64,000 nucleotides of DNA from Octopus bimaculoides (Eukaryota), in assembly GCF_001194135.2 (NCBI RefSeq), contig NC_068985.1, forward strand, positions 108,199,979-108,263,978, given 5' to 3'. Numbering within the stretch: position 1 is the stretch's first letter; each line of letters starts with the position of its first letter. A program made the translations under genes and the position numbers. Below, piece by piece: positions 12,780 to 61,548 of the stretch. Under the pieces are notes generated by a model. That model was not told the DNA's origin and made no database searches. It worked only from the letters and a program-made list of their open reading frames with translations.

Positions 12780-12913
12780 TCACATCCCAAAACAATAGGA
12801 TAAACTTCCAGTAGCGGTATGGTAACTGACTTTATTATATAATCCTGCTTCGTTAGACAGCACCATCTGATTTGGGGGTTTTTCAATGCATTGGAATTCG
12901 GTTACATAATCAC
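12780..12913 (-). CDS. Gene 1 probable last coding exon SDYVTEFQC...SYCFGM*
   Basis: TTCAG acceptor, phase 1, open 44 codons to TGA; AATAAA about 100 nt downstream. Confidence 0.6.
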
Positions 12914-34383: not shown

Positions 34384-36246
34384 AATAATAGGGAGATGTA
34401 GAGAAAGTTAACATAAGATGTGCTGCATGAATGCACATACTAGATTAGTGACAGGCAATGAGTAAGAGAACATACAATGAAAGAAAAATGATTCAAAGAC
34501 AAAGGTGGTGCTGAGAAAGTATATGTATGTATGCATGTATGTATGTATTATGTATGTATGTATGCGTGTATGTATGGATGGTTTTATGTATGAATAGATG
34601 GATAGATGGATGGAAGGATGCATGCATTTGTGTATGTTAATATTGTTATATCTAATTTTATTCCAATATATTAACTTTTTTTTATTTTGAAAAGGAGCAT
34701 TCTTTTCATTATTTTGTATAAACACACAATAATTTGATGGAAGTTAGATTATAATTAAGTAATATTCGTAGCCACTTTAACATGATTGCCCGTTCGAGCG
34801 GGCTCTACTGCGACTTTTTAACCCCAAGAGGACATCTCCTCTAGCTGGTTAACGATGCACAGCTGCATCCGATAAAATTGTGAGCAGGGGTGCGAACCCC
34901 TACCATCTCCTAGCAACGGGACAAGTAGACCAGTCCTGGTTTCGAGCTATTTCTGCCACTCCTCAATACTGGACACTTTGTCTGCCAAAGATGATGGCAG
35001 CACTCTACTCTACGCAATATGTATATATTTCAAGCGAACACACAGCCGCTGATTTTGCAACAATTTTACTTGTTCGGCAAAATGAGTCCGATACAACAGA
35101 TACCAGATTTGAAAAATAAGTACTCTTGTCGAGCAGACTTAATTAAACTTTCATGAGGTGCCCCAGCATGAACGCAGGCAAATAAGTGAAATTAGTAAAA
35201 GAATAAAAGTGCATTTATCAGACATTGACTGACATCGATAACTAATAACAAATAAATTATATTATTTTTAAAAATATTATTAAAATAAAGATGTAATTGA
35301 TAATGATATCCTTTTTACTCACCTTTAGAGCTAAATTAAGAATATCATGACGCACTTCATTTGTTTCGTCTTCCATGAGAAGTTGTCTCAAAGTGAGATA
35401 AGCATAAGTCTTTTCAGTAATTTCAGAAAATGACTGAATACTAGTCAAACTGGAATTTTGCGAAAAACCATCATCTGAGGTAAAGTCATCTCCATATAAT
35501 TCTAGCTCCAAATTTTCCTTATTTGGCCCCAAGTGGTTTGTCATTGTTAAACTCACATTTATAGTTGGTCGGTATTCTTGCGGCAAAACACCGGAAACAA
35601 CTAATTCTGATCCTTTGAAGTAGTTGCTAAATGATGTAGAACTAGTATTAACAGCATCATCTAAGTAAACAAATGTAATATCCTTTAATAAAATGTTAGA
35701 TATTTCTTTAAAAAGATTTTCAATTTGAAGTTTACTGTCAGAGTCTATGTAGATCCTCCTATTAAATCCTCCGTTTTCTGTGGCAAGCTTACGAAAAAAA
35801 TTATTGATAGATTTTTCTCCGAAACAAAGGGTGAATAATGAAATCTCTTCGTTGGCTTCTCTGAAATTTTTCTTGATTTCTTCGAGGTTAGTGACTCCTT
35901 CTGTTGGATATCCGTTAGTAAGAAATACGATAATACTTTTCTTCGTAGAGGTTGAAGTTGATTTGTGTTTCTCTACACTTTGAAGGAGAGCAGCGTTAAT
36001 GTTTGTACCTGAGAAAAAAGTAAAATTACATATTCAGAAAAAAATAACAGAATGTTTGTACTAATAAGGAATTAGGATCATCAATACAAACTTTATAAGA
36101 AAGCATCCCAGACGTATAATTCAAAATTAACCGTAACCAAATCGTTTGGCATGAAAAGATGAATTTAATCATTAGATGTTAAAATGTGAAACTATTTTAA
36201 AATGTTTAAGCAACATGCGAGTTCAAGATAAAAGTTCCATAACAGC

Positions 36247-37025: not shown

Positions 37026-39502
37026 GGACTGTAATACTTAGTAATAAGAGCTTTAAAATAGGGACATGAAGGACCATTATCAAATAGTGGACTTACATTT
37101 TAACATTCTGAATAAAAGTAAATTCAATAGTTGGAAAGTAAAAGGTGGCGAGCTGGCAGAGTTGTTAGCACGCTGGACGGAATATCTTAGCGGCATTTCG
37201 CCCGTTGCTACATTCTGAGTTCAAATTCCGTCGATGTCGATTTTGCCTTTTTGCCTTTTATCCTTTCGGAGTCGATAAATTAAGTACTAGTTGCATACTA
37301 GAGTAGAAAAGAATATTTAGAGTGTAAGACAAAGGATGCCATACTGAAGAGGAAAACTAATAGGTTGGGAATATAAGTTAATGACGGCTACTGCAAAGCT
37401 GGTTAGCGGCTAAATACAACGAAACTTCATCACAACTTCTAAAGGAAGTGTTGGCACTGCAACGTCTGCCAGCAATCACACTAACATATTATAACATGAC
37501 ATATATGAGAGTAAAAAGAAGTAAGCTAGCAAAACAGCTTCGTCCTTATCTTCTGGATACGGAATGTAAAATGATAATTTAAGAACTAAATAAAGTATGT
37601 AGCAAAAAGGAACTTTGCCGATAATTTGAAGAACTATATATATCCATGAACTCACGATAATAGAATTAAAGTTAACCCTGAGTCTTCTTCCTTAATATGA
37701 TCTAGTAAAATTTAACGATATTGATAGATTGTAATGCAATGATAAACAAAATTCGATATAAATATAATAATTTTTTTTTAACTTACTTCCATTGGTTTGA
37801 AGTTCCTTAATGTAATTTTTGCCTAATTTTTTGTTAAGATTGTTTGATATTAAAAATTCGTCCTTCATCCACGAAACGCCACTACTGAATGTTCCGATGA
37901 GAAATTTATCAAGTTCTGAATCGAGTTGATCAAGGATATTTTCCATAGCTTCGCTCATTTGTTCAATTTTACGACCAGACATTGATGCACTGATATCAAG
38001 CATAAATACAATGTGCTTTGGAAGACTTGGTAAGGAATCAGGAGTGAAGAAGTGCACAAAGTAGCCATCAACTGCCTGCGAATTTTGAAGAGAAAATAGA
38101 ACATGATGGTTTATTTTAATAACATTTTACGGGAAATTATTCCAACTATTTAGTATGAGATATTGCTAGCAGATATGATAATATTTAGTCACAATATACA
38201 GCATATCAAATATATAGTAATTGTAGTCCTGTTATCAGAAGAGAAATAGATTTATTTATGTTAACAACAAAATAAAAGATAACCCACTGTGCAGTTTGGA
38301 ATACCAGTATGAACCTTCGATTAATTCTTTTATCTAATCCAGAAGACACATACTTATAGATGTGTTCAACAACGTCCACTACATTCTCAGATCAAAGATA
38401 ATTTACCGTACATATCATTTTACTAGGTCTTTGGATTTTGTTATATAAATCTGTATATAGTCGGCTCTTTGCTTAATTTTCAAGATTTTATTTATCTAAT
38501 GAAAATGGTTAATTGTTAAACACTCAGCCGCTGCCACGTTTCTACCATCGTCATTTTAGAAGTTGTCGCTATTCTCCATGACTGTCTCTTGATGTTTAAA
38601 CCACCAAACAAACATAACAAGAAATCGATACCACAGTTTTAACCTAGTATTTCAATTCTCATTTCGTTTTCCTAATATGCACGCATTAAAAAATATTAAA
38701 AAAAACACTTACATCAACGCAGAAGTTAATAGCTTAGCTGAGTAATGTTTTTAACAAGTAAAATGTTGCCTCAATTGATCATCGCAAATTTGCCTTCATA
38801 TGTGAATATTTATCCTTCACCCCACAGTAAAATTTGACACCCCAATATCCAGTTGAAGTAGTCTATAGGGTGACACTTCAAGTACTAGACAAATCTTATA
38901 ACAAGTTAGCAATAGTTGCTTGCTTTTTTGATGAATAATCGCTTAATGTCAAGGATGCTCTTCTGGGTGCAATTGTAGTAGAAAATGGTTCGTCTCAGGG
39001 TTTGTACACTGCTGTCAAGTCTACGCTTACAAAAGATGTATCTATGAACAACAAACTTGGATTTGCCAGCGATCTTCCAAGATACTTAACATCTAGCTAC
39101 CAAGGCTATTAATTTGTGAAAAATGCCCCTTAGAGACCCTGAGAGATCCTGTGAGAAATTTGAAAACCGGTTGCCGTCCGCTCTCACAAAATTAACCGGA
39201 GCAAGTAAGATCGAGGAACCAAATCAATATAACATATGCGTTCAGTGGTGGGGGTTTTGCATTTCGAATGCACTCTGGAGCCTGAATGGTAAGCATCTCA
39301 TCGACTCAGAAAGGACGAAAGGCAGAATCAGTCTCAGCGATATAGCTATGCATATATACAATCATGTATGGATATAGGTATATAAGACGAAAATACATAA
39401 AGTATATTCCAATACACATACATAGACATATGGAAGCACGGGCACATTTAAAAATGACGAAGAAAGTGAATGGGAGAGATAATGAGATAAAGAGAGTAAG
39501 GG

Positions 39503-39598
<96 letters not shown>

Positions 39599-42500
39599 AG
39601 AGAAAGAATAAAAATAAAGTTTCTTGTATATGAAGATGAAATATGTTGTTATGAAGAAATTGTGATTTCTTCATAACACATACGTACACATTTATATCAG
39701 ATAAGATTATAGTATAATATTCCCTTTTAAATGACAAGATGAGAATTTGATTTGAAACAATAACTTACATATATTAAATTTGAATTATTTTGACGATCCA
39801 CATCATACTGTATTTTGAGTGAGCCTGCAACAACACCATCTATTCCTGAAGTTTCTTCTTGTTGTTTACGACTTGGGTTGTATTTGATGTAAACCTCTCT
39901 ACTGCTGATGTACTCAATTAAAGCAGAATCCAGCTCTGTTTTAAAAACAAGCAATATCTTAATTTGAATATTGATAACAAAGTTGAATAAATACCTCTTA
40001 TTTCAATATCACTTAACCTGATGAGATATAATTTAAACGACTTGATGGACTATCTAATGTTGACTGCGAATCAGTGTCATATTTACTGTATGATAATGTA
40101 AAGTGAACAGCGGCAGAATTAAATAATGTTTACTGCGGGTGGGTAAGTTTAGTTTGTCTGCAATAATGGACTGCGTAACATTTGATGATGAGATGGTACA
40201 AAATGTTCACAGCACAATATCTATTTTATGACAGTGTAGTAAGAAACTCTAGGTGAAGAGCTGAATGGCTGAAGGTCTTCAGAGAACAAGTACCTTCTCA
40301 TTTGTAAGTATTTCATCTCTCAATCCCTTAAAGTCTAAGAAACCGGCCACACCCAGGATACCCCTCTTATACTCCACTTTGTACTACTGTTTACATTGTA
40401 ACTAGTACCTGCTAGGTCTTTAAGACCACCCAGAGCCTAGAATTCCTTGGCTGTCGTAACCACTTCCGTTTGAGACACCAGTTAAACGTAGGGTATTATT
40501 GTACCTTCCGAAATTTTCTTTTATTCTTCCTTCACTACTAATGTATATAGTGAGGAATCATTACGCATACTATCGGAATGGTAACAATTAAGTTTGGAAT
40601 TTACTGTAACGCACTGTATTCTGTGTCAAGGGCAATCTTAATAAGTGATCGCCTGTGTAGTTATGCAATGAGAGTTGTTAGCAAGAGTATATTTAACAAG
40701 AGTGTGCCGTAACAAGAGGTAGTATAACATTTAATTTGATATTTGTATAGTAACCGACTGTTAACTGGAGGATAGATAACACTTGATATATGGGAAAATA
40801 TAATGCTTGCTCCAGAACAATGAAATGTTTACCGCAGCGCAGTGTAATTCTACTTGGAGAAGGAGACACTACTACAAGAGTGGGCACTTGGACATTATAT
40901 TGTTGACTCTAGAATGATATAATCGTTAGGAAGAGACAATTTTATCCCAGAGACATTATAATATTAGTAAATTGTAAACAAAATGACGTACGATTCCGAT
41001 GTGTATCATTATTCTAAGTGAATTGTATTTTCTTTATACAAGAATAAAAAGCAATTTTTAGACTATTTATTGATAATTGCATCTCTATAGTACTACCTAC
41101 GAGTAATAGTCAGAAAAAGTTGCCTCATGTTTCATATAGCCTGTCATCGGTATGTCATACTTATCTGTTACCCTTCGCAATGTAGTTGAATGATTATCAA
41201 TGCTAATCCGTCGGCAGTATGCCTTATATCTTTGCTGTTAATTCCCCACCTTCTATTTCTATATATGGTTCTTTGTAGTATTTTGTACAAGTATAGAACT
41301 TGATATAAGACTAGCGACTGTTGAACGTTTACTTCTGTTGACGTTTATATCAGCTTTATTTACTGCCTAAAGAAATGTTTAGATTTAACCCAGTATAAAG
41401 AAAAATTTTCGCTACAGAAACCTTTCTATTATCAGGAATGTGATTTTCTTTAATTTTGTAGTGCGCCCACACTGTGGAACATATAAAAAAACAGTGATTA
41501 AATAAGATTGATGAAGATAATGACAAATGAAGGTACAGAAAGAACCACACAAAAATGATTTGCCAACCTTTGTCAACGGTAATATCCGTTAATTTATTAT
41601 TTGTAATTTTTGGTACAGACACGTGAATAATATCTTGCGGTTCAGTAATGAAAACTTCAACTAAAAAGTCATCAATAATTTCACCAGTGGTCACATGAAT
41701 GTCGTGCCTGTATTTATTGTTCTGTCGTGTCAGAAGTTCTTGGTAAGTCAAGTTGTAAACTATATACTTCTGTGGTTCAACATTAACAGATATATCAAAG
41801 GCTCTTGTAAAGCGGTGTCTGGAAAATGATAAAAAAGAATAATTGAAATATTTTGGAGATATTCCAAAACTTCAAGAAATATCAAATAGTTGGGAAAATA
41901 TAAAATTACTCGACTTCAACAGTGCCAGAACTTTGTCCTGTTTCGCTGGTATATTTGTAAATATCTTTAGCAACTGATTTTTCCTTTACTTCTCCTACAG
42001 TCACATGTCCATCAATTTCCCTGCAATCGAAAATAAAATTAAATAAAAATAATTAACATTGAAAAATCTCAAAAATTACAGCGGTTAAATTTGACAGTTT
42101 GTACCAAAGGAAAGGAAAACACTCCATCCCGAAATAAAAGTATTTTGAAAAATGAAAATATATCAACTAGATTATGGCTGTCAGATCACAGTTTACTGAA
42201 AATAGCCACCCTCGGTTTCCAGCACGGCCTCCAGGCGCATGCATTTCTCATAGTGTCGTTGGGTGGACCTACGAACGCTTCCTTGATCTTGGCCACCAGC
42301 TCATTCTTAATGTTGCTGGCAGAGTATTTGACACATATTATAATCCATGATATTGCGATTGGAGGAATGAAGATACCAGAAATTAGAGCTGTTGATGTCG
42401 TAGAGATTCTTCGACAACCACGTCTGACTCATTCTGGAAGTATGGCAAGGGGCCGAATCCTGCTGTTACACATATGACCTTTCAGTAGCAATCCTATACA

Positions 42501-45464
42501 GCTAGGTATTAGCCACAGTTTCACATAGACGTTACCAGTTTCACATAGACGTTACCAGCTTCACATAGACGTTACCAGCTTCACATAGACGTCTAAATTG
42601 AGTCTAAGGCTCTATTCAGAAATACAGGTTTGCATGATGTCACCCTCACTGAAGACACATCAAAAGACCATCACGATTTGGGGGATCTTGGTTTTCATGA
42701 TTTCCATGTCATATCATACAACTTTTACAGTGTTCATAGAGCATTGGGCAGCAGTCATGATTTCGACATTTTGATAACTAGTGTGAATCATTAGAATACA
42801 AGTAACAATTTTCCAGTTACTTGTATTCCAGTTACTTTTCCAGATGCCATCCTGTCCTCGTATCAACTAACTTTTTCCCAGCTACAACTTTAATCTCCTG
42901 ACGAAAGTAAACATAAGTCATCAAAGTTTGCCCGAACATCCAGTATTTTAGAAGTTTAAAAATTTGAAAATTTTCCATTGTGTTCCAAATGTTTGTATGT
43001 AACAATCAAATAAACTCACATGGCGCCCACAATTGTATTAAGACTTGATTTGGAAAATAATTAACAAAATGAATCGTAATTATTTTGATAAAGTATTTCA
43101 ACAGAATGTTTCATTTTCACTGTTATGCACTTAATCAAATTTTCTTGAGGCCGTTTCCTGAGATATGAGAGCTTTCTAAATCATGGTGCGCTTGATGTGT
43201 CTGAAAGTCAATTTGAATACTTGTGTGTCGTCATAAATAGCAAAAAAAAACTGTAACAACATTTGTATAGAAATGTGGTTTTCTTACCGACGGGATGGTA
43301 TTATTTCTTTACTACCCACAAGGGGCTACACACAGAGGGGACAAACAAGGACAGACAAACGGATTAAGTCGATTATATCGACTCCAGTGCGTAACTGGTA
43401 CTTATTTAATCGACCCCGAAAGGATGAAAGGCAAAGTCGACCTCGGCGGAATTTGAACTCAGAACGTAGCGGCAGACGAAATACCGCTAAGCATTTCGCT
43501 CGGCGTGCTAACGTTTCTGCCAGCTCGTCGCCTTTCGACGGGATGGTATGTGTAAGTAGGGAAACGTAAGATGGGAAAAGTAAGTAGCTCGTTAAAGTAC
43601 AAAATCAACGGTATGAGATTGATATTAAAATTTATAGTTAGAAAGTAGATCTTCAAATGATCTTCATAACCAAGATGTTAGAGAAGGATGGACATTAAGC
43701 ACAAGTAGCTTAGTCAAGAGACTTTAATGGCATTCACAATGAGAAGCTTCGCTGAAGGCAAGTGCAATAATCATGCTTTCAACGGGATTCTCGAACGTGA
43801 TAGACCAGAAGCTGGAGAGCAAACATCTGATAGATCTTTTGCTCCTAATGGTGTGATTGCTTATCTGGTCTTCTTTCAGTTCTGAGATACTTGTAGGTAA
43901 ATTATCGGCAAGTTGAGTGGGTATACTCTGCTTGTGGCTTATTCTACAACAATGATATAACTGATGTGGGGCATTAAAAATACCAAGGCTTTTTAAATAC
44001 CTTAAATACTTACGATTTCCCTAAAAATGTCGCAATACATCTGTGGGCCATGCGCAGGGATTTCTGTATGTGATGCAAAGGCTGGTATCACATACAGAAA
44101 TTGGAACGTTTAGATAAAGGTATATTTTTATCGAGAGACAGAAAGAGAGAAGAAAGAGAGAAGCTGAAGATTTAAAGGTAAATGAACGGACATCCTTTTC
44201 ACCAGTGGGGTTGCGTTTATAAAATTTTAAGGATCGGTAATCTAAGTTAAAAACATGATTTGAATAAGATTAATTATGCGCGTGTGTGTGTGTGTGTGTG
44301 TTTGTGTGGTGTGTGTGTGTTTGTGTGGTGTGTGTGTGTGTGTGAGCAGTATTGAGCTAGAAATAGAACCGGCAGACAATATAATGTTTTGTTTTAAAGG
44401 TACTTTTACAGGCTGGGAGGAGTGGAAATTTGCAATCTGCACAGTGTGTCCCCTTCAAATCTTTATTGTTTTGCAGGCATTGAAATGTTGAACAGACACT
44501 TCTAAATGAACGCTTGTTTTTAGATATTGTAGGCTGTGCTTCCACGACTATGCACCAGCTACTGGGATGGTTTGTATTTATGGGTTTAGTTGTACGTGGG
44601 AATATGAACGGAAATGAAGAGAAAAATGCTTTAATCAATCGCTTAACAGTTTCAGACAGATCGGATTTTCAATCAAAAATAATCTTCATAAAACTGTCTG
44701 CCCTGATCAGTTAACGACTGTATTTTATCTAAGCTCACGGAAAGCGTATACCGCACTCTGTGATGTCATTCTTCTAATTTTCCACACGCAGCTGTGATTT
44801 ATTCTTAATTTCTAGCGGGTACTAATAGCTAAATAATAAAAAAAAAAAACTTAAGATTCGCTCTGACGTATGATACTTTGATTACATTTTCATTTGCAGA
44901 ACAGTTTCCCTCTTTACTCTTTTTACTCTTTTACTTGTTTCAGTCATTTGACTGCGGCCATGCTGGAGCACCGCCTTTGGTCGAATCAAATCGACCCCAG
45001 GACTTATTCTTTGTAAGTCTCGTACTTATTCTATCGGTCACTTTTGCCGAACCACTAAGTTACGGGGACCTAAACANNNNNNNNNNTTATTCTTTGTAAG
45101 CCTAGTACTTATTCTATCGGTCTCTTTTGCCGAACCGCTAAGTTACGGGGATATAAACACACCAGCATCGGTTGTCAAGCGATGTTGGGGGGACAAACAC
45201 AGACACACAAACACACACACACATATTTTATTTTATTTTTTAATTTTTTTTTTACTTGTTTCAGTCATTTGACTGCGGCCATGCTGGAGCACCGCCTTTG
45301 GTCGAATCAAATCGACCCCAGGACTTATTCTTTGTAAGTCTCGTACTTATTCTATCGGTCACTTTTGCCGAACCACTAAGTTACGGGGACCTAAACACAC
45401 CAGCATCGGTTGTCAAGCGATGTTGGGATGACAAACACAGATACACAACATATACACAACATAT

Positions 45465-45497
<33 letters not shown>

Positions 45498-47219
45498 CAC
45501 ATATATACGACGGGCTTCTTTCAGCTTCCGTTTACCAAATCCACTCACAAGGCGTTGGTCGGCCCGAGGCTATAGTAGAAGAAACTTGCCCCAAGATGTT
45601 ACGCAGCGAGTTTGAACCCGGAACCGGTTGGAAAGCAAGCTTCTTACCTCACAGTCACGCCTACGCTGATGTATGCTTTTTCAAATCGTTGGGTCATTAA
45701 CCGAACGTCTAAATATAATTAATGACTTCTAAAAATTAATACATCAAATGGTCCGCTGTATTCGATAACTTATACCAAGAGAACTTCGTTTTCTTTGGCT
45801 AAAAAAGAAACAGCAGTAGGATAGACTAGAAATATATGTTGCGGAAAATGAATTATACTTACATAGAAAAATCCGATATAAATGAATTAAGGGGCACCAT
45901 TACGTGTAAGTCTGCGCTGACTGAAAAATTGTGCGGGTTATAATATTTCATGGAAACTAAAGTGGTAGCAAATCGATATTTAATATCACTGATTACATGA
46001 AGTGATTTCAGGTTTACGTTCTGAAAAAAATCCAAGAAATATCGTAAATCACTTAAATAGAGCTTTATTTACTTTTAACCTTTATGTGGCAATCAAAAAA
46101 TCCATAAAATCAATTTTGTTTAGGGGATAAGTAATAAACCTCTAAGATTATCATATTTAATCCTATTTGAAAAACAAAGACGAGCATTATGGCATAGATA
46201 TTTCAAAAGTTAGCCACCCACAGGAAATGCAAATATTTATTGCGCTTCTTACACGTTTTATATTTTGATGAGTATAAAACCAATCGCAATTACATTATCT
46301 TTCAATGAGAGGTCATGGTGACCACAAAGAACCCGAGACTTTTAATATTCATACATATGGACTTGTTAATGCTTGGCCCTACATGATCTCTGGCACGAGC
46401 TGACCAATGTTTAGAGACGTTCCAGCCAGGACAGTTCAGTCTTGTTAAGTGTATCTAGGAATGCATGATTGAATGTGTTCCTTTTCTTCAAACCCCCAGA
46501 GTGTGATTTAAAGAAAATTTAGCTATTATCCAAAGCAGATCAAGGAGATATGACGAAAAAGGCTTCCTTTGTTAAACCATGTTTAGAGAATAAGGGGAGA
46601 ATGCTAAATGCATATTTTAAACAATATACTAATTGTAAAATACTATACAAAATTAATAATCTCAGTTATTAATAAGAGATGAGATTGGGTTTGAAAACTT
46701 AATGTCTGGATATAAATAATCTTTTAAACAAGCAAGTTGCAATACGCAGATAAAAATCTAACAATACTTCCTATTCCACTAAGAGTGTTAATCTTAAAAA
46801 GACCCTGAGAGACCCTTTGAGACACTTAACAAAAGGTTGCAACCTGCTCTCACAGAATTAACCGGAACAAGTAATGTCGAGAGATCTGAGAAGTAAAATA
46901 CATAACAACAGTCCAAAATAACATATGCGTGAGAACAAAAGTTTAGTGGGTGAGGGTTTTGCCTTTTGAATTAACTCTGGTACCTGACTGGTGCCCATCT
47001 CATATCGATCCAGCCTGTGCAAAAGGCAGAGTCGGTCTCACCAATATAGTTATGCATAAATATACGCGTGTATGTATATAAGGATATATAACAAAAGCAC
47101 ACAAAATACATGCCAGCATACATAGAAATATGGAATCGCGCACATACTCAAAAGTGTAGATGAAAGTGAACGAGAGAGATAATGAGATAGTGAGATAGTG
47201 AGATAGAGGGAGACGGGCT

Positions 47220-47318
<99 letters not shown>

Positions 47319-47588
47319 AGCAAATAGAAAGTGAAAGAATAAGAATAAACAATTTATGAAGAATAAATAATTTTTAAACAATATATGAAGAAAAAAAAAA
47401 TAATGTAATGAAGAAATGAATGTGATACACGTTCACACATAAACACAGATACACGCAAGCACACACACATACATACACACACACACACACATNNNNNNNN
47501 NNNNNNNNNNNNNNNNNNNNNNNNNNNNNNNNNNNNNNNNNNNNNNNNNNNNNNNNNNNNNNNNNNNNNNNNNNNNNNNNNNNNNNNN

Positions 47589-47635
<47 letters not shown>

Positions 47636-50600
47636 TAACATATAGTTATAATATTATAATCATTTTTAAATGGCAAAATGGGAATTTGATGTAAAACAAT
47701 AACTTACATATAGTGAATTTGAAATATATTGACGATCTACACAATATTCTACTTCGAAGAAACCTGCGGCAACACCTTTCTCTATAATTTCTTCTTGTTG
47801 TTTACGACTTGGGTTGTATTTGATATAAATTTCTCTACTGCTGATGTTCTTAATTAAAGCAGAATCCAGCTCTATTGAAAATCATTAACAATAACTTAAT
47901 TTACATCTATAACAGACTTGAATGAATATCTGTAATTTCAATATCTTCAAACCTAAAGAGATATAATTTAAAAGGTTTGATGGACTATCTAATGTTGACT
48001 GCGAATCAGTGTCGTATTTACTGTGTGATAATGCAACGTGATCAGCGGCAGAATTAAATAATGTTTACCTTGGGCGAGTAATGTTGTCAGTGTATGACAT
48101 CTTAATACTAGTTTTAATTAGTAATAATGGACTGCGTAACATGGTGATGATGAGATAACACAAAATGTTTACTGAATGATATCTATTTTACAACAGTATA
48201 GTAAGAAACTCTGATGGGGGCGGGGAGCTGAATAGTTAAAGGTCTTCAGAGAACAAGCACCTTCTCTTATGCAAGCATTTCGTTTCTTAATTCCTGAAAG
48301 TCTAAGGAACCGGGTACACTCAGGATGCCCCTCTTTTCTCTCTATTTCATGCTACTGTTTGCATTGTAAATAGCACCTCCTGGGTGTTCAAAATTCCCCA
48401 GAGCCTAGAATTCCTTGGATGTCGTAACCACTTCCGTTTGAGACACCAGTTAAACGTAGGGTATTATTGTACCTTTTCTTTTATTCTTCCTTGACTACTA
48501 ATGCATATAGTGAGGAATCATTATGCTTACTACCAGAATGTGAACAATTAAGTTTGGAATTTACTGTAGCGCACTGTATTGTTTGTCAAGGATGATCTTA
48601 ATAAATGGTAGACAGTATAGTGATGCAGTGAGAGTGGTTAGTAAGAGAATATTTAACAAAAGCATGCCGTAACTAGAGGTAGTATAACATTTAATTCGAT
48701 ATTTGCACGGTAATGGACTGTTAACTGGAGGATAGATAACACTTGATATATGGGAAAATATAATGCTTACTGCAGAACAATGAAATGTTTACTGCAGCGC
48801 AGTGTAATTCTACTTGGAGAAGGAGGCACTACTACAAGAGTGGGCACTTGGACATTATATTGTTGACTCTAGAAAGATATCATCTTTAGGAAGAGACAAT
48901 TTTATCTCAGAGACATTATAATATTAGTAAATTGTAAACGAAATGACATTTGTACCATTTTGATGTGAAGTATTTTCTTTATCGGAGAATGAAGATTAAT
49001 TTGTAGACAATTTATTGATAATTGTAGCTCTATAGTACTTTTTATAAGTATTGATAATAATGAAGAAAGTAATATAATCTTTGATATAATTTGTCATCTG
49101 TATATCTGTTGTGTCGACGCCCCCAAGCGAAGCAGTAGGCTCGACCAAGACTTATAAATAGAGGTAGTCTGACCGTGATAGGAGTTGAGTGGTTACCTGA
49201 CAGTTGAATAGAGTGGACTGACGGTCGACTGACAGTTGAGTAGCTGTCGAGTAGCAGTCGAGCAGAGATCATCCGAAGGTGCGAGATAGCAGTAGCTTGA
49301 GACATAACAATATCATACATTTCTGTTAGCCTTAGCAATGTTGTTGAATGTTTATCAATTCTAATCCTTCCAGAGTAGGCCTATCTTCTTTTCAATTTGC
49401 CACCTTATATTCCTATATGTGGATCTTTATTGCATGTTGTACAAGTATAGAACTTGAAATGAGACTAGATTTTTATTAACGTAGTTTTCTTATATTTCCC
49501 TTACATCTACTTCTGTTGACTTTTATTACATCTTTGTTTACTGCCTCCAACATAAAAAATAAAAATTCGCTACAGGAACCTTTTTATTAACAGGAATAGC
49601 TTCTGTATTTTTGAAGTGCACCCTCTTTGTGAACCATATAAAAGCAGTAGTTAAATGAAGTTTATAACGATAATGAAAAAATGGAAATATAGAGAAAACC
49701 AATCATAAATGATTTGCCAACCTTTGTCAACGGTAATATCCGCTAATTTATTAATTGTAATTTTTGGTACAGACACGTGAATAATATCTTGCGGTTCAGT
49801 AATGAAAATTTCAACTAAAAAGTCATCAATAATTTCACCAGTGGTCACATGAATGTCGTGCCTGTATTTATTGTTCTGTCGTGTCAGAAGTTCTTGGTAA
49901 GTCAAGTTGTAAACTATATACTTCTGTGGTTCAATATTAACAGACATATCAAAGGCTCTTGTAAAGCGGTGTCTGGAAAATGATAAAAAAAAAACAACTG
50001 AAATACTTTGGAGATGTTGCTATTAAAATACTAAGTGCAAGAAATATCAAATAGTTGGGAAAATATAAAATTACTCGACTTCAAAATAGCCAGAACTTTT
50101 TCCTTTTCCTACGTCCTTTTCGTAAATATCTTTAGCAACTGATTTTTCCTTTACTTCTCCTACAGTCACATGTCCATCAATTTCCCTGCAATCGAAAATA
50201 AAATTAAATAAAAATAATTAACATTGAAAAATCTCAAAAATTACAGTGGTTACATTTGACAGTTTGTACCAAAGGAAAGGAAAACACAATATCCCATCCC
50301 GAAATAAAAGTATTTTGAAAAGTGAAAATATATCAACTAGATTATGGCTGTCAGATCACAGTTTACTGAAAATAGCCACCCTCGGTTTCCAGCACGGCCT
50401 CAAGGCGGCTCCGGAATCTGCATTCCTCACAGTGTCGCTGACAGGACCTACGAACATGTCATATTTTACAACTTTTTCAGTGTTCATAGAGCATTGGACA
50501 GCAGTCATGATTTCGACATTTTGATAACTAGTGTGAATCATTAGATTACAAGTAACTACTTTCGAGCATTTAGATGCTTTCAAGTCCTGTATCAGCTAAC

Positions 50601-53600
50601 TTTTTTCCAAGCTACAACTTTAATCTCCAACGCTGTTGACTGTTCACCAAGCTGTTCCTGACGAAAGGAAACATAAGAAGTCGTCAAAGTTTGCCCGAAC
50701 ATCCAGTATTTTAGAAGTTTAAGAATATTTGAACATTTTTCCATTGTGTTCCAAATGTTTGTATGTAATAATCAAATAAACTCATATAGCGCCCATAATT
50801 GCATTAAGACTTGATTTGGAAAATAATTAACAAAATGAATCGTAATTATTTTGATAAAGTATTTCAACAGAACGTTTCATTTTCACTGTTATGCATTTAA
50901 TCAAATTTTCATGAGGCCGTTTCCTGAGATATGAGAGCTTTCTAAATCATGGTGAATTTGATGTGTCTGATATTCAATTTGAATACTTGTGTGTTGTCAT
51001 AAATAGCAAAAAACAGTAACAGTATTTGTACAGAAATGTAACAAGATGGTATGAGTAAGTAGCTCATTAACATACAGAATGAACAATATGTGAGAGATAA
51101 TGAAATTTATAACTGGAAAGTAAGTCTTCAAATAATCTTCATGACTTTTAGAAAACAGTATAACGCGCTCTCTGCTGTCATTCTGTTTTCCCACTCGTAG
51201 CTGTCTATTAATATCTAGCACTTGTAGCTAAATGAATAGACCAGCTTCTTTCTGAAGTACTTTGATTATATTTTACTTTGCAGACTAGCTTCCCTCTCCT
51301 ACTTTCTTGTCGAATGGTTTTCCTTCATTGCACGTCTTCATAACATCCGACTGAGAATGAAACTTATCAATTCTTACCAAAAATGTTGATAATCACTAGT
51401 TAAACAGGCATGAGAATGTATAAACTGCTTTGTAAGCAGAAAGTTTTACATAAAAAACATGTAAGCTCTATGCCTTATAATCAGAATGCTAATAAGAATA
51501 TTAGAAATACAATGCTAAATTTACGACATCGTCAATTAGTAAATTGCTATAATTTCAATATATATATATTTTTTTACAAATCGTTGGGTCATTACTTGAA
51601 CATCATAATATATTCAGTGACTTCTAAAAATTCACACATCGCACTGTCCGGTTTATTTGGTATCTTATTCTAAAGAACTTCGTTTTCTAAGGCTAAAAGG
51701 GAAACAACAGTAGATTAGACTAGAAGTATATATCGTGAAAAATGAAATTTACTTACATAGAAAAATTCAATATAACTGATTTAAGAGGCATCATTATGTA
51801 TAAGTCTGCGCCGACTGTAGAATTGTACGGGTTATAATATTTCATGGAAACTAAAGTGGTAGCAATTCTATATGAAATATCACTGATTATATGAAGTGAT
51901 TCCAGGTTTGCTTTCTGAAAATATAAAGTCAAGAAATATCGTAAATCACTTAAATAGATTTTTATTTAATATATACGGATCAAGATATTCTCGACTATGT
52001 TATCAAAGGTGGATTTGTGGTGATTGGAATGAATGTTTAAGTATTTAAGGTATTGTTAGGTTTGTGATAAGGGGAGTATTAGGAGGTTTATAACTTTAAA
52101 GTTACTTCTAAAAAGTTAGTAGTTTTGTGAGAATTTTCAAAAGTAATAGACAGATTTAGGCTAGAGAAAAAATTGTGTACATTTTTTCTAGCTCGTTCTA
52201 AAGAGGATTTATTCATGCTCTTATTTCTTTATTGCCCACAAGGGGCTAAACACAGAGGGGACAAACAAGGACAGACAAAGGGATTAAGTCGATTACATCT
52301 ACCCCAGTGCGTAACTGGTACTTTATTTATCGACCCCGAAAGGATGAAAGACAAAGTCGACTTCGGCGGAATTTGAACTCAGAACGTAAAGACAGACGAA
52401 ATACCGCTAAACATTTCGCCCGGCGTGCTAACGTTTCTGCCAAGCTCTGCAACTAGCAAGGCGTCATTTCTGTAGAGGCCTCACTTGAGGTTAGGGAAAT
52501 GTATTTCGAGCTGGTGGAGTATGTATAGTCCAACGAGATCCGTGACTTGGGCGGAGTCGGATGATCTCGTGATAATGTCAAATAAATTGCTATGAATATT
52601 GGTATTGTTATAGTGACTGACCCGGCACCAGAGTTGTTCTGAAAAGAAATAAGGAGTAGACAGTTACCTCCCTTGAAAGCAGTTGTCTCATCAATTGGTT
52701 ACTGGATGGCACACGTCGTGGTGCTGCATTGTGGGAGAATGAAATCTATAGCTTTTGGACGGCGCGACCAAAGTGATTAGACGTATTTTCTTCCTGCTGC
52801 GATTCCAAGTGATGTAACGGTAAAAAATAACCACATCTTGTATATGAATACAAACGCACAGAAAATGCCTTTATCTTTTTCTATACAAGTACTGTAATTT
52901 GCATTCAGTATCAAGATTAAAACGACTTACGGCCGTATTTGTAAATTCTTATCGTCTTGTTATTCTTGTATTTGGAGAATGTCTGCCTTCTACATTTCAG
53001 CTTTCTTTGTTAGGAGCATAAGTTCCTAAAAATGGTGACCCCGTGGAACGAATAGACAAGTTTATATTTTACAAGTTTACAGCGAATGAAAAAACAAAAA
53101 AACAAAAAAAAAAACAGACGAGTAGAACCGTTAACTGTTGTAAACGGTCGACATCTAAAAAATTTTTTTTCCCTTTCAAGCTTCGCCAACTTGCCTTCTC
53201 CAATTCCTTTTGGCGTTCCTCCACATTCCTTTCTTCTCAACGTTTTTTGCTTTTATAAAATGAACAATGTTCCGCTCTCTCAATTCAATGGGGAAGCGAA
53301 AATGTGGTTTTCGCAACTGGAATCCTATTTTATTGCTACCAGCACTCGCGAACCACTGGCCAAACTGCAAATCACATTGTCCGGCTTACCGTCCCCACTT
53401 GTTTCGTCTGTCTGGGATTTACTGACAGATGCACCAGATGGGATATCCTACGAGGAGTTTAACTTAGAGGTGCTTCGCAGAAACTCTCCGTCCGCTGAGA
53501 GCAAGTTCCGCTCATTGCCGCAGGATGAAACTATTTTTCTCTCGTATGCAGCCCAATACCCAGTCGGTGCTGGTGCATCTTTTGGACACCACTCTTATTG

Positions 53601-56600: not shown

Positions 56601-58915
56601 TTTAAATACAGCGCCCACTGTGGAATAGCGAGAGGATGTATCAACATGAACGCGAGTAGAGTCTGAATTCCTTCGTAGTATATCCATTGTGATACTTGTA
56701 TAGTTCATAGACATGCAAACCTAGGTGCAAAATAACTTTATTTTGTGTGCAGTTTTCAACGAAATGGGTGCCAGAGGCAGTTATTTGTCGAGGGAGTGAG
56801 GTAAATGAAACGTTAATAATAAAATATGTAGATATTTTAGTAAGATTTAGCCGAACGTCAAGTCGTACAAAACTTTAAATAATTTTGTCAGGTGCTTATG
56901 TATATAATCAATTGGATTTATTATATTTAGCAAATAATCTTTCAATTCAGGCAGAAAAAAAAAAAAATTAAACTTATAAGGAATTTTAAAACGATCTTTT
57001 GTAAATGTTCTCTATAGTATATTTTTTCTGAAATAATCAGTACACCATGGGAATGATAAATGGTATTAGATTACACTATAAATACCTCAAAGATGTAATA
57101 ACTCTCATCTATCCAAACAAATTAGCATTGAAGCTGCAAATATTGCGCAAATATTCATGTAATAAATATATACGACGTGGTATGCAAAAGTAATCGGAAA
57201 GGTTCTCTGCGAGATAAGCCCGTTGTAGTTCAGGCTTCCGCCGCTAGAAGCCACTTGATGCGACCCTCAGGCATCAGTGTGCCGACCGGCGTCATCAGGT
57301 GGACTCATACTACCATGTGGTGAGTTTTTGTTTTGCAATGCTTCTTCCCTGTTCGTCGACTTTTGAGATGGCTGAAACGAAGGAACAGCGTGCTTCCGAG
57401 AAATTCTATTCTCTGCTAGAGAAAACGGCCGCCGAAACAGTTCTAATGCTACAACCAGCTTACAAGGACAGTGCCATGAGCAAAGCACAGATTTACGAAT
57501 GTTTTTCATACTTTAGTAATGGTCACTTGTCGCTTGAAGACCAACCTCGTTCAAGGCGACCGTCGACGAATGAAAACATCACGAAAATCCATGAATCTAT
57601 CTTGAAGAAATGTCGCCGAACAACTGACAAACTTGTTGATATGACTGGTGTGTCCTGAAACTCCTGCCGACGAATTTTGAGTGGCGAATTGAAAATGAAA
57701 AGAGTTGCAGCAAAAATTGTGCCTCACTTGCTCACGGAAGATCAAAAGCATTCACAACTGAATGTATGTCGTGAACTTAAAGAACAATTGGAAGTTGAAC
57801 CGAACCTTTCTAAAGTAATCACTGGTAACGAAAGCTCGTGTTACGGTTACGACCCAGAAACGAAGCAGCAATCAAGCCAATGGAAGCATTCAATATCCTC
57901 ACGCTCCCCAAAATTGCATCAAGTGAAGTCCAATGTCAAGACGATGCTGATTTGTTTCATCGATACGAAAGGAATTGGCCACACAGTATTTGTTTCTCCT
58001 GGTCAAACTGTTAACCAGATATTTTACTTGGCAGTTCTGAAGCAGTTGCGAGACGCGGTGAGACGTAAACGCCCCGACTAATGGCAAAGTGGAGAGTGGT
58101 GGTTTCATCACGACAATGCACTTTCGCACACCGTTTTGAGTATCTGACAGTTTTTGATCAAACATAGCATGGCCCCGTTTACCCACCCTCCCTATTCATC
58201 CAATCTTGCTCCTTGCAACTTTTTTTGTTTCCCTGAATGAAAAAATCCTTAAAGAAAACCGTTTAGCAGATGTGGAAGAGGTGAAGAAAAAAAAAAACAA
58301 AAAAAAAAAAACGATAGAGGCGTTAAAAGCATCACTTCGCAAGAATTCTAGGACTGCTTCGAACAGTCGAAAACGCATCTGGACCGATGCATTGTTTCAA
58401 ATGGAGAATATTCTTGAAGGTGATAAATGTGTAAGCGGGTAAAAACTAACTGAGTAAAATAATATTGCAAAATTCCGATTTTGGGTACTCCCTCGTAGTT
58501 AAATATTGCTAAGAAGCACGATAAAGCGCTTATTGTCTAACCTGATCATTAATAGGTTCATAATCATTGAATAGAAAATGTTAGATTAAAAATTCGATAT
58601 GATTTATAACAAGAGAATATTACTATAGCTTCAATAAACGAGTTCGATTTCTATTAGTTCTAACTATATGGCCTCGAATGTCCGCTAGTTATCGAAATAA
58701 AATCTGCAATAAAAATTGATGTTGGAAAATGATAGAAACTATGATATTAAATCGCTCTCTTCAGAAATTACTGTAAAATCAATAACACTAAATGATATTA
58801 AGATTTCTTTAAAATAATTATTATAATATTGACTTACTTGAACAGTTTCTCCATTGGCTGTTATCCCCAAATAATATACAGCACCGAACATTACAAATAA
58901 CAACCGCGAAGCCAT
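12780..58915 (-). CDS. ITIH-like gene 1 (signal peptide - VIT x2 - vWA - micro-exon linker - ITI C-terminal domain), multi-exon span
   Basis: Hand-spliced exons all have AG/GT boundaries and compatible phases; joined length 3096 nt = 1031 aa + stop. Family motifs: SLHxISDIx[66 protein letters not shown], DLCF. Paralog-level symbol cannot be assigned. Confidence 0.85.
13308..13574 (-). CDS. Gene 1 exon C2 GVFVYGQV...KFVPAGGIL
   Basis: 267 nt open frame, CTACAG/GTAAGT, phase 1->1; resembles the ITIH 'G..VNGQL' and 'GLLG' motifs. Confidence 0.78.
13831..13935 (-). CDS. Gene 1 ITI C-terminal domain exon C1 GVLLKPLNCSTDLCFTDS...LLADEQA
   Basis: 105 nt, CTTTCTAG/GTACGA, phase 1->1; 'LCF...L..D..G' pattern of the ITI-HC C domain. 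Confidence 0.75.
14741..14755 (-). CDS. Micro-exon M6 (15 nt, E-QSCQ)
   Basis: ttttctctcttttgacag|AACAATCATGTCAAG|gttggg; phase 1->1. Confidence 0.55.
16100..16225 (+). mobile_element. Helitron Rep/helicase relic
   Basis: Translates SYDALQYPLLFLNGEDGYY and, frameshifted, KKAVSCMDF; both match Helitron RepHel motifs. Confidence 0.7.
16370..16738 (+). mobile_element. Tc1/mariner-type transposon 3' end
   Basis: LEDFEKRIQEVLNDISYDALQKVVHSILGSLRKLADTTGGYIEI, then a terminal 'tacttttcaccaaccctgta'. Confidence 0.7.
17653..18150 (+). mobile_element. OR-type SINE with an alternative 3' tail
   Basis: Head and body as 63472-63812 but internally deleted; different 3' segment after 17950. Confidence 0.8.
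18345..19975. repeat. Partially triplicated unit around micro-exon M5
   Basis: 'taattttgataaaa...aaccactga' at about 18358, 18893 and 19897; 'atgtgttcagatattagttat...ccggttca' at about 18750 and 19790. Confidence 0.8.
18815..18832 (-). CDS. Micro-exon M5 (18 nt, D-PEPVI)
   Basis: tttttcatttctgttgaag|ATCCTGAACCGGTAATAG|gtgagt; phase 1->1; AAG acceptor is less common. Confidence 0.5.
20800..24195 (-). mobile_element. R4/Dong-clade non-LTR retrotransposon, 5'-truncated and degenerate
   Basis: RT motifs NYRPISCL, WIDYCKAYD, RRGIFQGDCLSP, HLLFMDDLK; C-terminal restriction-like endonuclease region (LWDF..., IIVGALG, ALLGTARILR); several stops and frameshifts. Confidence 0.9.
24361..24613 (-). mobile_element. 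Short 3' fragment of a second R4/Dong-like element
   Basis: ...EVQKIVLMGTAHILRKILSM* plus 3'UTR, flanked by (TAA)n. Confidence 0.75.
24666..24900 (-). mobile_element. TAA-tailed retroposon fragment (non-coding)
   Basis: Non-coding repeat-like segment ending directly in (TAA)n on the minus strand; family assignment from recall only. Confidence 0.45.
24905..26290. repeat. Local duplication (24905-25150 ~ 25935-26200; 25605-25680 ~ 26220-26290) around micro-exon M4
   Basis: Shared 'tttaaacgctatct..gatgcgagacaagccac..catggatacatctcagttaacaataactccgtattt' and 'tttgcggtctatgtg..agtttaagtatttag'. Confidence 0.8.
25689..25703 (-). CDS. Micro-exon M4 (15 nt, D-TRKQ)
   Basis: ttacttttttag|ATACGCGTAAACAAG|gtatgt; phase 1->1; acceptor flank resembles M2. 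Confidence 0.62.
27717..27731 (-). CDS. Micro-exon M3 (15 nt, A-IVIH)
   Basis: ttgctttttcag|CGATAGTGATACATG|gtaagt; phase 1->1; flanks paralogous to M2. Confidence 0.7.
28201..28881 (-). mobile_element. Internally deleted mariner element
   Basis: Perfect terminal IR tatcaggtcatcccataagttct (includes the TA TSD); HLRHIML... N-terminus joined directly to the EFY.EGI.KLV.RW..VID..G.Y C-terminus. Confidence 0.9.
29947..29961 (-). CDS. Micro-exon M2 (15 nt, R/G-FVNQ)
   Basis: ttactttttcag|GATTTGTGAATCAAG|gtaagt; phase 1->1. Confidence 0.7.
30436..30870 (-). mobile_element. R4/Dong-like endonuclease fragment
   Basis: WYEHVP...ILWDYDFQTDRVIEHRRPNIVLL...IIDVAIP...VVIGALG. Confidence 0.85.
31476..31490 (-). 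CDS. Micro-exon M1 (15 nt, E-YLPS)
   Basis: ttctcttcctttgcag|AATACCTTCCTTCAC|gtaagt; phase 1->1. Confidence 0.7.
33602..33674 (-). CDS. Gene 1 exon 8 [24 protein letters not shown]
   Basis: 73 nt, CACAG/GTAATT, phase 0->1; hallmark ITIH motif. Confidence 0.92.
35323..36008 (-). CDS. Gene 1 exon 7, vWA C-terminal half plus hybrid region STNINAALL...FLTNG...GSELVVSG...YAYLTL...LALK
   Basis: 686 nt open frame, CTCAG/GTGAGT, phase 1->0. Confidence 0.93.
37141..37320 (+). mobile_element. SINE of the 7791 family
   Basis: aaggtggcgagctggcaga...ctgagttcaaattcc. Confidence 0.8.
37787..38075 (-). CDS. Gene 1 exon 6, start of vWA domain [34 protein letters not shown]...
   Basis: 289 nt, CGCAG/GTAAGT, phase 0->1, DxSxS MIDAS motif. 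Confidence 0.93.
39769..39935 (-). CDS. Gene 1 exon 5B ELDSALIEYISSREVYIKYNPS...QYDVDRQNNSNLIY
   Basis: 167 nt, AACAG/GTAAGT, phase 1->0; 'PSxxQQ' and 'YDV' ITIH motifs. Confidence 0.88.
41568..41818 (-). CDS. Gene 1 exon 4B HRFTRAFDISVNVEPQ...DITVDK
   Basis: 251 nt, TTCCAG/GTTGGC, phase 2->1; overlaps ORF 41356..41751. Confidence 0.88.
41910..42020 (-). CDS. Gene 1 exon 3B EIDGHVTVGEVKEKSVAKDIYKYTSETGQSSGTVEV
   Basis: 111 nt, TTGCAG/GTAATT, phase 2->2. Confidence 0.88.
42075..43100 (-). mobile_element. Tc1/maT-like transposon relic in copy B (intron 2B)
   Basis: Degenerate WPPxSPDxNPMDY-like motif and C-terminal EAVLETEGGYFQ*-type end; contains a 20-bp tandem repeat at 42525-42592. Confidence 0.7.
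43302..43535 (-). mobile_element. Young full-length SINE with a 14-bp TSD
   Basis: TSD cgacgggatggtat at 43288-43301 and 43536-43549; absent from duplicate copy A. Confidence 0.9.
43670..43900 (-). mobile_element. CR1/Jockey-type LINE RT fragment
   Basis: ESMIIALAFSEASH..H*SLLTKL...HPSLTSW, a decayed version of IALDISKAFDRVWH.GLL.KL. Confidence 0.55.
44915..45665 (-). mobile_element. OK-type SINE with repeated tail segments around a gap
   Basis: Reverse complement of the 61366 family. Confidence 0.8.
45863..46020 (-). CDS. Gene 1 exon 2B (VIT) NVNLKSLHVISDIKYRFATT...SDFSM
   Basis: 158 nt, TTTTCAG/GTAAGT, phase 0->2. Confidence 0.88.
47708..47871 (-). CDS. Gene 1 exon 5A ELDSALIKNISSREIYIKYNPS...VDRQYISNSLY
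   Basis: 164 nt, open frame, TAG/GTAAGT, phase 1->0; one codon shorter than exon 5B. Confidence 0.8.
49107..49309. mobile_element. Solo LTR (203 bp)
   Basis: TGTTGTGTC...GACATAACA termini, 5-bp TSD ATATC, TATAAA box; empty site in copy B near 41150. Confidence 0.85.
49722..49972 (-). CDS. Gene 1 exon 4A HRFTRAFDMSVNIEPQ...NLTYQELL...DITVDK
   Basis: 251 nt, TTCCAG/GTTGGC, phase 2->1. Confidence 0.88.
50075..50185 (-). CDS. Gene 1 exon 3A (VIT) EIDGHVTVGEVKEKSVAKDIYEKDVGKGKSSGYFEV
   Basis: 111 nt, TTGCAG/GTAATT, phase 2->2; typical VIT 'IDG..G.VKEK' motif. Confidence 0.85.
50232..50900 (-). mobile_element. Same Tc1/maT relic in copy A, more deleted
   Basis: EAVLETEGGYFQ*; near-identical to 42075-42240. 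Confidence 0.7.
51757..51914 (-). CDS. Gene 1 exon 2A (VIT) KANLESLHIISDISYRIATT...NFSM
   Basis: 158 nt, TTTTCAG acceptor, GTAAGT donor, phase 0->2. Confidence 0.85.
52220..52445 (-). mobile_element. SINE of the 7791 family
   Basis: Near-identical to 43302-43535. Confidence 0.85.
52455..52640 (-). mobile_element. Penelope-like RT fragment
   Basis: DSAQVTDLVGLYILHQL..FPNL.*GLYRND, resembling the PLE GLYRDDG motif. Confidence 0.6.
53033..54650 (+). mobile_element. Ty3/Gypsy LTR retrotransposon relic (gag-protease-RT 5' part)
   Basis: PBS TGGTGACCCCG (complementary to the tRNA-Trp 3' end); gag MWFSQLESYF; protease FLVDTGA, ILGTDFL; RT AYHQIPV..EDIPKTAVTT..G.FEFL.MPFGLRNA; frameshifted and truncated. 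Confidence 0.9.
55737..56452. repeat. Degenerate inverted repeat (arms about 55737-55972 and 56263-56452)
   Basis: cgcttaggacagtatatacta / tagtatatactgtcctaagcg, and aaatatttatggttaaggggaggtaataacca / tggttattacctccccttaaccataaatattt. Confidence 0.85.
57171..58497 (+). mobile_element. Near-full-length mariner (Mos1-like) transposon, inactivated
   Basis: KIVPHLLT, ITGNES.C.GYDPETK.QS, HHDNA, HPPYS.NLAP; in-frame stops; degenerate TIRs tacga...aaaa..tcggaa. Confidence 0.92.
58838..58915 (-). CDS. Gene 1 exon 1, signal peptide MASRLLFVMFGAVYYLGITANGETVQ
   Basis: Hydrophobic N-terminus; donor CAA|GTAAGT, phase 0, matching exon 2. Confidence 0.75.
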
Positions 58916-61365: not shown

Positions 61366-61548
61366 GGCGCAGGAGTGGCTGTGTGGTAAGCAGCTTGCTT
61401 ACCAACCACATGGTTCCGGGTTCATTCCCACTGCATGGCACCTTGGGCAGGTCTCTTCTACTATAACCTCGGGCCGACCAAAGCCTTGTGAGTGGATTTG
61501 GTAGACGGAAACTGAAAGAAGCCCGTCGTATATTTGTATATATACATA

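Follow-up and report, generated by a model that had tools for sequence, protein, structure and literature searches.

An intragenic tandem duplication of a four-exon VIT cassette in an ITIH-like gene of Octopus bimaculoides

An ITIH-like gene on the minus strand of a 64,000-nt stretch of the Octopus bimaculoides genome (contig NC_068985.1, positions 108,199,979 to 108,263,978; hereafter the window) carries exons 2-5, which encode a VIT module, twice in tandem. We consider it very probable that the duplication is genuine and that both copies are transcribed. When both cassettes are read in order, the gene encodes a protein with two VIT domains in front of a single vWA domain, and in our judgement the chances that this two-VIT protein is a main product are evenly balanced. 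Throughout, U denotes the upstream cassette, which is transcribed first (copy A of the first-pass annotation of this DNA), and D the downstream cassette (copy B).

Gene layout and the predicted protein

The 1050-aa model of the gene maps wholly within the window, from 58915 to 12783. Scanning of all six frames, together with an inspection of the splice sites, showed that each of the eight cassette exons lies between an AG acceptor and a GT donor and is free of stop codons. The first-pass annotation had listed exons 2-5 as present twice (158/111/251/164 and 158/111/251/167 nt) with canonical splice sites, and had placed phase 0 at the end of exon 1, at both ends of each cassette, and at the start of the vWA exon; all of this was confirmed. 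The range that it gave, 39125-51960, holds the eight cassette exons but neither exon 1 nor the first vWA exon. The cassettes total 684 nt (U) and 687 nt (D), each beginning and finishing in phase 0, such that four products are in frame: the double form, U only, D only, and U2-U4 joined to D5. If U5 is skipped alone, with U4 joined to D2, the frame shifts and a stop follows at codon 210. The intron between U5 and D2 is 1687 nt long. Exon 1 at 58838..58915 is the only one in the window, and no second exon 1 lies between the cassettes; a fused pair of genes, with a promoter and signal peptide of its own between the cassettes, was rejected on this ground.

When the spliced two-cassette protein was used as a query, the exact matches were RefSeq XP_052823892.1 (1050 aa) and the older UPI00071D27BA (890 aa); both agree with this reading at 100% and carry U followed by D. 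No single-VIT isoform of this gene is listed in RefSeq. As a model, the two-VIT protein is therefore not new, being already an unremarked public RefSeq prediction, and no mention of it was found in the searched literature library, including by accession numbers. The double-VIT coding capacity of about 1031 aa that the first-pass annotation had proposed thus corresponds to the existing 1050-aa model, but the junction that links the two cassettes, U5/D2, was not seen in RNA.

The domain content agrees with the earlier assignment as an ITIH-like protein with VIT and vWA domains, which is supported by Pfam matches and by a colinear alignment with human ITIH4 and ITIH1. XP_052823892.1 has two matches to Pfam VIT (PF08487), in answer to a check proposed for the spliced protein; with the cut-off at 26.5 bits, either cassette taken by itself reaches 77.9. 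The protein has one vWA domain (PF00092, 68.6 bits, residues 505-680), in which the residues of the metal ion-dependent adhesion site (MIDAS; D510, S512, S514, and T581) do not vary across an alignment of 45 sequences. In each cassette, exons 2-5 encode a whole N-terminal module, namely, the Pfam VIT domain and the beta-rich stretch up to the vWA. AlphaFold2 predicted an equal pattern of beta-strands in both cassettes, with a mean predicted local distance difference test (pLDDT) score of ~75 for U, where the alignment was shallow, and ~84 for D; the overall predicted template modelling (pTM) score was 0.57. The N-terminus is hydrophobic (MASRLLFVMFGAVYYLGITANG) and forms a helix over residues 2-21 in the predicted structure. 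PF06668 (ITI_HC_C) was not detected in this protein or its octopod paralogues, and is present in bivalve and vertebrate homologues. Because this domain is associated with bikunin-linked heavy chains, we use the name "ITIH-like" rather than treating the protein as a demonstrated heavy chain.

Divergence, gene conversion, and selection

The repeat is a direct tandem duplication of a whole segment, introns included. The unit begins ~50 nt upstream of exon 2 and ends ~630 nt (D) or ~900 nt (U, including an assembly gap) downstream of exon 5. Identity between the copies is 87.0% in aligned introns, where gaps open at a rate of 11.1 per kb, and 90.2% in exons, where the sole indel is 3 nt long and in frame. 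The first-pass annotation had stated that both copies stayed intact while their introns diverged and took up different transposable elements. The acquisition of different elements was confirmed, and the exons are indeed open, but the contrast between exons and introns was overstated, given that the aligned introns retain such high identity. Furthermore, exon 2, the 3' part of exon 3, and exon 5 have diverged like introns, mostly by non-synonymous changes, and exon 4 has a different history.

The two copies of exon 4 are 98% identical, and the introns that flank them are 74-92% identical. All five differences in this exon are non-synonymous. In addition, U4 of O. bimaculoides is 94% identical to D4, 86% to D4 of Octopus sinensis, and 76% to U4 of O. 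sinensis. The lack of synonymous differences and the closer affinity of U4 to D4 than to its positional counterpart in the other species mark this as gene conversion: exon 4 was homogenised by D-to-U conversion in the O. bimaculoides lineage, after the duplication. Purifying selection as the explanation of its high identity was rejected on the same observations. Another conversion tract runs from the 3' end of intron 2 into the beginning of exon 3 (Table 1), and the first 64 nt of U3 and D3 are identical.

For the age of the duplication, exon 5 is the informative exon. The O. sinensis protein XP_036358745.1 (P0002) has the same two-VIT architecture in the same order, in a model that ranges over 240 kb and may be partly chimeric. 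In exon 5, protein identity is 87% between U5 of the two species and 83% between D5 of the two species, compared with 64% between U5 and D5 of O. bimaculoides, and the derived motifs KNISSREIY and RQYISNSLY are shared across species. Exon 5 thus groups by position rather than by species, which indicates that the duplication predates the split between O. bimaculoides and O. sinensis. The upstream exons 3-4 of XP_036358745.1 are 92-93% identical to another O. bimaculoides paralogue (P0004), and the exon orthologous to U5 is its upstream exon 5; this model is chimeric, or else conversion followed another course in O. sinensis.

The reading frames are open beyond the expectation by chance, and to this extent the claim that both copies stayed intact is upheld. 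At the rate observed in introns, ~7.6 indels would be expected in 684 nt of exon, compared with the one in-frame indel found (P of at most one = 0.004). When only unconverted exon sequence is considered, the probability of no frameshift is ~0.03 and that of no stop codon arising from 62 random substitutions is ~0.08. The ratio of non-synonymous to synonymous substitution rates (dN/dS) between the copies is 2.4 for exon 2, 5.3 for the 3' part of exon 3, and 0.73 for exon 5, and is undefined for exon 4 (five non-synonymous and zero synonymous differences). Over exons 2-4, there are 36 non-synonymous and ~3 synonymous differences (Fisher p = 0.04). At 97 positions that are otherwise invariant, U has 10 changes and D has seven, and intact paralogues have 4-13. 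Judged from these sequence comparisons, the pattern is one in which the frame is kept and the sequence is free, or pushed, to change, unlike that of a decaying set of pseudo-exons.

Transcripts and the products they may encode

The RNA evidence is based on Logan contigs of runs X25, X26, and X28 (with X53 in addition), which are short and give no connectivity along the transcript. For the upstream cassette, contigs of 164-417 nt link exon 1 with U2, and U2 runs on into exon 3, both in X25, X26, and X28. The U3/U4 junction (49972/50075) was found with zero mismatches in X25 and X26, and the first 45 nt of U4 are the only part of that exon seen as U-specific RNA. For the downstream cassette, the 3' 102 nt of D2 are present exactly and are spliced to exon 3 in X25, X26, X28, and X53, and the D3/D4 junction (41818/41910) is covered by a D-specific contig in X25. 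A 60-nt contig of X26 spans D5 and exon 6, although paralogues may share it. Another O. bimaculoides run, X76, holds 82% of the indexed words of D5 and is not among the holders of U5. The claim that both copies are used is supported for exons 2-4, which were found in spliced RNA from both, and is not supported for U5, which is absent from the O. bimaculoides RNA runs in the index. Contig depths of exon 1, U2, and D2 are near-equal within each run (84.4/83.7/84.2 in X28 and 8.8/10.9/7.0 in X25), as expected if one transcript carries both cassettes.

The reading that we favor starts with the intragenic tandem segmental duplication, of ~5-7 kb per unit, in one member of an octopus ITIH-like tandem array. 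Default splicing would then include both cassettes and yield a secreted protein with two consecutive VIT modules before one vWA; this expectation follows from the eight exons having ordinary splice sites and from the cassettes preserving the frame. The extra N-terminal module, which changes faster, may add or vary a binding surface, and the D module would keep the canonical contact with the vWA. Because the cassettes are multiples of three and the U5-D2 intron is 1.7 kb, both of the usual simple mechanisms that enforce a choice of one or the other are absent.

Several observations weigh against this reading. The U5/D2 junction was not seen in any RNA contig or read examined. For U5, none of the 13 indexed words (0.00) was found in any O. 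bimaculoides run of RNA or unknown type in the index, even where U2-U4 were held (X25, X26, X28, X12, and X14), and the 5' 57 nt of D2 were not found in RNA contigs. The RefSeq model is no proof of the U5/D2 junction, since Gnomon models can be completed ab initio, and the O. sinensis model, with its span of 240 kb, may be chimeric.

The force of the missing RNA is weakened by what else is missing. In X25, X26, and X28, the 3' 100 nt of either exon 4 and D5-specific sequence were likewise not found in RNA contigs, and at least one of these must be in the mRNA, such that these absences are not proof. More generally, no RNA junction that enters D2 or leaves U4 or U5 was observed in the runs examined. 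Contig assemblers prune minor paths when abundant paralogues share flanking words, and Logan contigs evidently lose segments of this gene for that reason; several paralogues that share such words are expressed 5-20 times higher than this gene. At least two paralogues that have different exon-1 ends and share 91-99% identity with D2 in exon 2 (45862-46012) are far more strongly expressed in X24-X26, X42, and X43, and a further exon-4 variant in RNA has five mismatches to both U4 and D4. Such strongly expressed and near-identical paralogues confound short-read analysis of this locus.

In X24, X42, and X43, ~6% of the raw reads of each run were read; the gene is barely expressed there, and the exon-2-like reads are nearly all derived from paralogues with other exon-1 ends (ANGEPRQTAS or ANGEPIHTA), providing no information on junctions. 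When RNA was mapped over the whole stretch from U to D2, matches to the microsatellite swamped the junction tables. A peptide search with the U4-U5-D2-D3 segment (211 aa from XP_052823892.1; 218 candidates) returned two distant fish matches and missed known exact matches, and was thus uninformative. RNA of other octopod species that shares words with U5 was traced to exon 5 of other family members (SEGNGVAGLL type) and was rejected as U5.

An alternative that we consider rather unlikely is that the copies substitute for each other, with one VIT per protein, either as whole cassettes or as U2-U4 and D2-D4 that both join D5. Tandem exon duplication is a classic source of mutually exclusive exons (PMC9013439; PMC9741552), all of the single-VIT products are in frame, and dN/dS values that exceed 1 over exons 2-4 would be in keeping with alternative modules that have diversified. 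U5 was also undetected in RNA in which U2-U4 and D5 were detected, which is more consistent with the three-exon-block form, in which U5 is a little-used relic. In that case, the open frame of U5 in two species would need another explanation if the exon is never used. Moreover, the junctions that substitution calls for, namely, exon 1/D2, U4/D5, and U5/exon 6, were not seen in any run examined, and in X28 the depth of exon 1 equals that of U2 and of D2 each, rather than their sum. Double inclusion is in frame, so that nonsense-mediated decay would not enforce a choice, and the 1.7-kb intron provides no steric block; the lack of a single-VIT isoform in RefSeq also speaks against substitution. 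The extended proposal that multi-exon blocks serve as regulated alternatives, with interchangeable and positively diversified VIT modules that are secreted and partly homogenised by gene conversion, is unlikely in our view. The swappable cassettes of about 803 aa suggested by the first-pass annotation are accordingly not supported by any junction in the runs examined. Among the five junctions that it had named for inspection, exon 1/U2 was observed, U5/D2, exon 1/D2, and U5/exon 6 were not, and D5/exon 6 is represented by the contig that paralogues may share.

It is also possible, but quite doubtful, that only the D module gives a functional protein, with U transcribed but non-productive or decaying, or with U-containing RNAs as minor by-products. 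Skipping of U5 would lead to the premature stop at codon 210 and to degradation of such transcripts, and U5 is indeed absent from RNA. In addition, U2 differs at several sites conserved in all relatives (in SDIKYRF, for instance, K is replaced by S, and in YRF, F by I). Among close copies, no other has as many invariant-site changes as U (10 compared with 4-7), and pairwise dN/dS is not below 1. On the other hand, all runs examined show exon 1 spliced to U2 and none shows it spliced to D2, which leaves a D-only protein without a demonstrated route to the signal peptide. The U4/D2 junction that skipping would create was not seen in any of these runs either. Finally, U gives a full-score VIT match, has no frameshift despite 11 indels per kb in the introns, and has a counterpart in O. 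sinensis that is also open.

Assembly, related systems, and neighboring features

Two assembly gaps lie within the duplicated region (Table 1). Both are intronic and neither touches an exon, such that continuity rather than the reading frame is what matters. The exon D2 is located on a 2.4-kb island flanked by the two gaps, and in the four DNA runs examined (X1-X4, from three studies), no short contig bridges either gap, including the one in the microsatellite. Across each gap, the order and orientation match those of the other copy. Below the second gap, the sequence at 46800-47350 is the homologue of that after D5, and above it, from 47617, the unit resumes exactly where the D copy does. Exact DNA contigs at 45973-46641 and 46615-47244 hold the unit end, the spacer, and D2 in all four runs, and most of U is also covered by exact contigs of these runs. 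The contig depth is equal for U and the D2 flank (23-37 in X1, 42-60 in X2, 11-15 in X3, and 46-65 in X4). Both copies are thus at single-copy DNA depth, and neither is collapsed or haplotypic, which answers the earlier call for a read-depth check of two copies. The suggestion that the copies are haplotypes or pieces of a neighboring paralogue joined across the gaps draws on the island position of D2 and the unbridged gaps, but it is highly improbable and was rejected, given that a 13% difference and several transposable-element insertions set the copies apart, well beyond the allelic level, that both are found exactly and at equal single-copy depth, that the island itself holds the unit end, spacer, and unit start with neighbors that continue the unit in register, and that the independent O. 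sinensis model shows a matching order.

A (GA)n microsatellite is present at a matching site downstream of exon 5 in both copies (39474-39620 and 47150-47350) and therefore predates the duplication; a (GT)n run (47430-47640) flanks one assembly gap. One SINE-like (short interspersed nuclear element) sequence has copies at 43295-43526, 52215-52447, 44929-45464, and 61292-61692, of which the first two are 92% identical. The SINE copies at 44929-45076 and 45250-45397 flank the 10-N gap and are 100% identical, which suggests local uncertainty of the assembly. In each of the four DNA runs, the word depth at 48930-49329 and 51530-51729 is 15-90x single-copy; both stretches are high-copy repeats, whose insertions are confined to the introns of the upstream copy.

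Vertebrate ITIH1-ITIH4 (structures 6FPY and 9C4F) likewise have a signal-peptide-like N-terminus, a VIT, and a vWA whose MIDAS motif reads D-x-S-x-S. Starting at the D cassette, the octopus protein is colinear with residues 32-600 of human ITIH4 (E = 1e-87) and residues 29-599 of ITIH1. Unlike the vertebrate genes, the octopus gene has a second complete N-terminal module before the canonical one, its protein has no Pfam ITI_HC_C match, and it resides in an octopus-specific tandem array. A DPHFII-type site is where ITIH heavy chains are ester-linked to the chondroitin sulfate of bikunin, and no recognisable site of this type was found in the octopus protein. The single-VIT octopod relatives, which include the XP isoforms P0003, P0004, P0006, and P0008 of O. 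bimaculoides, P0005 of O. sinensis, and P0007 and P0010 of Argonauta hians, have the exon structure in common and are 65-79% identical at the protein level, with some on the same chromosome; they differ in having one cassette and cover ~68% of the two-VIT query.

Mutually exclusive exons derived from tandem exon duplication have been reviewed (PMC9013439; PMC9741552; PMC5740500). The present case resembles them in having homologous tandem exons that diverged with length and phase kept, and differs in that the unit comprises four exons, is frame-neutral (684/687 nt), and tolerates double inclusion, and in that no either-or junctions were found. Among 150 representative homologues, a few other multi-VIT predictions were present: fish ROI16303.1, an exact repeat suggestive of an artefact or else of a very recent event; Logan transcript P0165, with VIT-vWA-VIT-vWA, i.e., two whole units; and a model from the clam Tegillarca that is flagged as low quality. 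No other diverged VIT-VIT-vWA arrangement common to two species was found in this set.

As a domain architecture, the two-VIT arrangement is a new variant; ordinary internal domain duplication, a very common mechanism, gave rise to it, and as such it is of modest interest. If the two-VIT protein is made, it would provide a clean and datable case of a new domain architecture from an intragenic segmental duplication. If the copies are instead alternatives, the gene would be an unusual and rare multi-exon case of homologous-exon substitution, or mutually exclusive splicing. The setting is a lineage-specific, fast-evolving family of secreted octopus proteins, with gene conversion and an excess of amino-acid changes between the copies. 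The finding is useful as a check of annotation and opens no long-standing question.

Table 1. Positions of features in the window, with junction and peptide sequences of the ITIH-like gene.
Feature	Position	Strand	Remarks
Exon 1, coding part	58838..58915	-	MASRLLFVMFGAVYYLGITANGETVQ, signal-peptide-like; ends in phase 0; GTAAGT donor
Upstream duplicated unit	46800..51968	-	54 nt before U2 to ~900 nt after U5, gap included
U2, exon 2 of upstream cassette	51757..51914	-	158 nt; exact RNA contigs in X25, X26, X28
Gene-conversion tract	50168..50407	-	~98% identical; from the 3' end of intron 2 into exon 3
U3, exon 3 of upstream cassette	50075..50185	-	111 nt; covered by exact RNA contigs
U4, exon 4 of upstream cassette	49722..49972	-	251 nt; 98% identical to D4
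U5, exon 5 of upstream cassette	47708..47871	-	164 nt; DNA contig covers 47616-47815
Assembly gap	47493..47588	.	In microsatellite, intron between U5 and D2
Downstream duplicated unit	39134..46071	-	Longer; extra transposable-element insertions in intron 2
D2, exon 2 of downstream cassette	45863..46020	-	158 nt; 5' 57 nt exact in DNA
Assembly gap	45077..45086	.	Within tandem SINE copies, D2-D3 intron
D3, exon 3 of downstream cassette	41910..42020	-	111 nt; D-specific RNA contig in X25
D4, exon 4 of downstream cassette	41568..41818	-	251 nt; D3-D4 junction in RNA
D5, exon 5 of downstream cassette	39769..39935	-	167 nt
Exon 6	37787..38075	-	vWA start, MIDAS motif D-x-S-x-S; starts in phase 0
Exon 7	35323..36008	-	Remainder of vWA and region after; RNA runs hold at most 48% of indexed words
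Last coding exon	12783..12914	-	Stop exon; C-terminus of XP_052823892.1
U5/D2 junction sequence			...TTCAAATTCACTATAT / AACGTAAACCTGAAATC
Exon 1/D2 junction sequence			...GGAGAAACTGTTCAA / AACGTAAACCTG
U4/D5 junction sequence			...ATTACCGTTGACAAAG / AGCTGGATTCTGCTTTAATTGAGTAC
U5/exon 6 junction sequence			...TTCACTATAT / GCAGTTGATGGC
U5-D2-spanning peptide			QYISNSLYNVNLK
Source stretch of U-only peptides			KANLESLHIISDISYR

Three transposon-protein-like open reading frames, all on the minus strand, are located in introns of the gene (28257-28574, 30439-30885, and 42189-42428). By eye, two of these resemble mariner-type proteins (helix-turn-helix and C-terminal fragments) and one resembles the C-terminal part of a retroelement ORF2. 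At 740-889 on the minus strand, we found exon 2 of the next ITIH-like paralogue (ATLKSIHVISDIKYRFATTQVSMKYYNPYNSAVLADLHVNMPHNSFISNFSM), which is most similar to O. sinensis P0005 and places the window within a head-to-tail array of ITIH-like genes.

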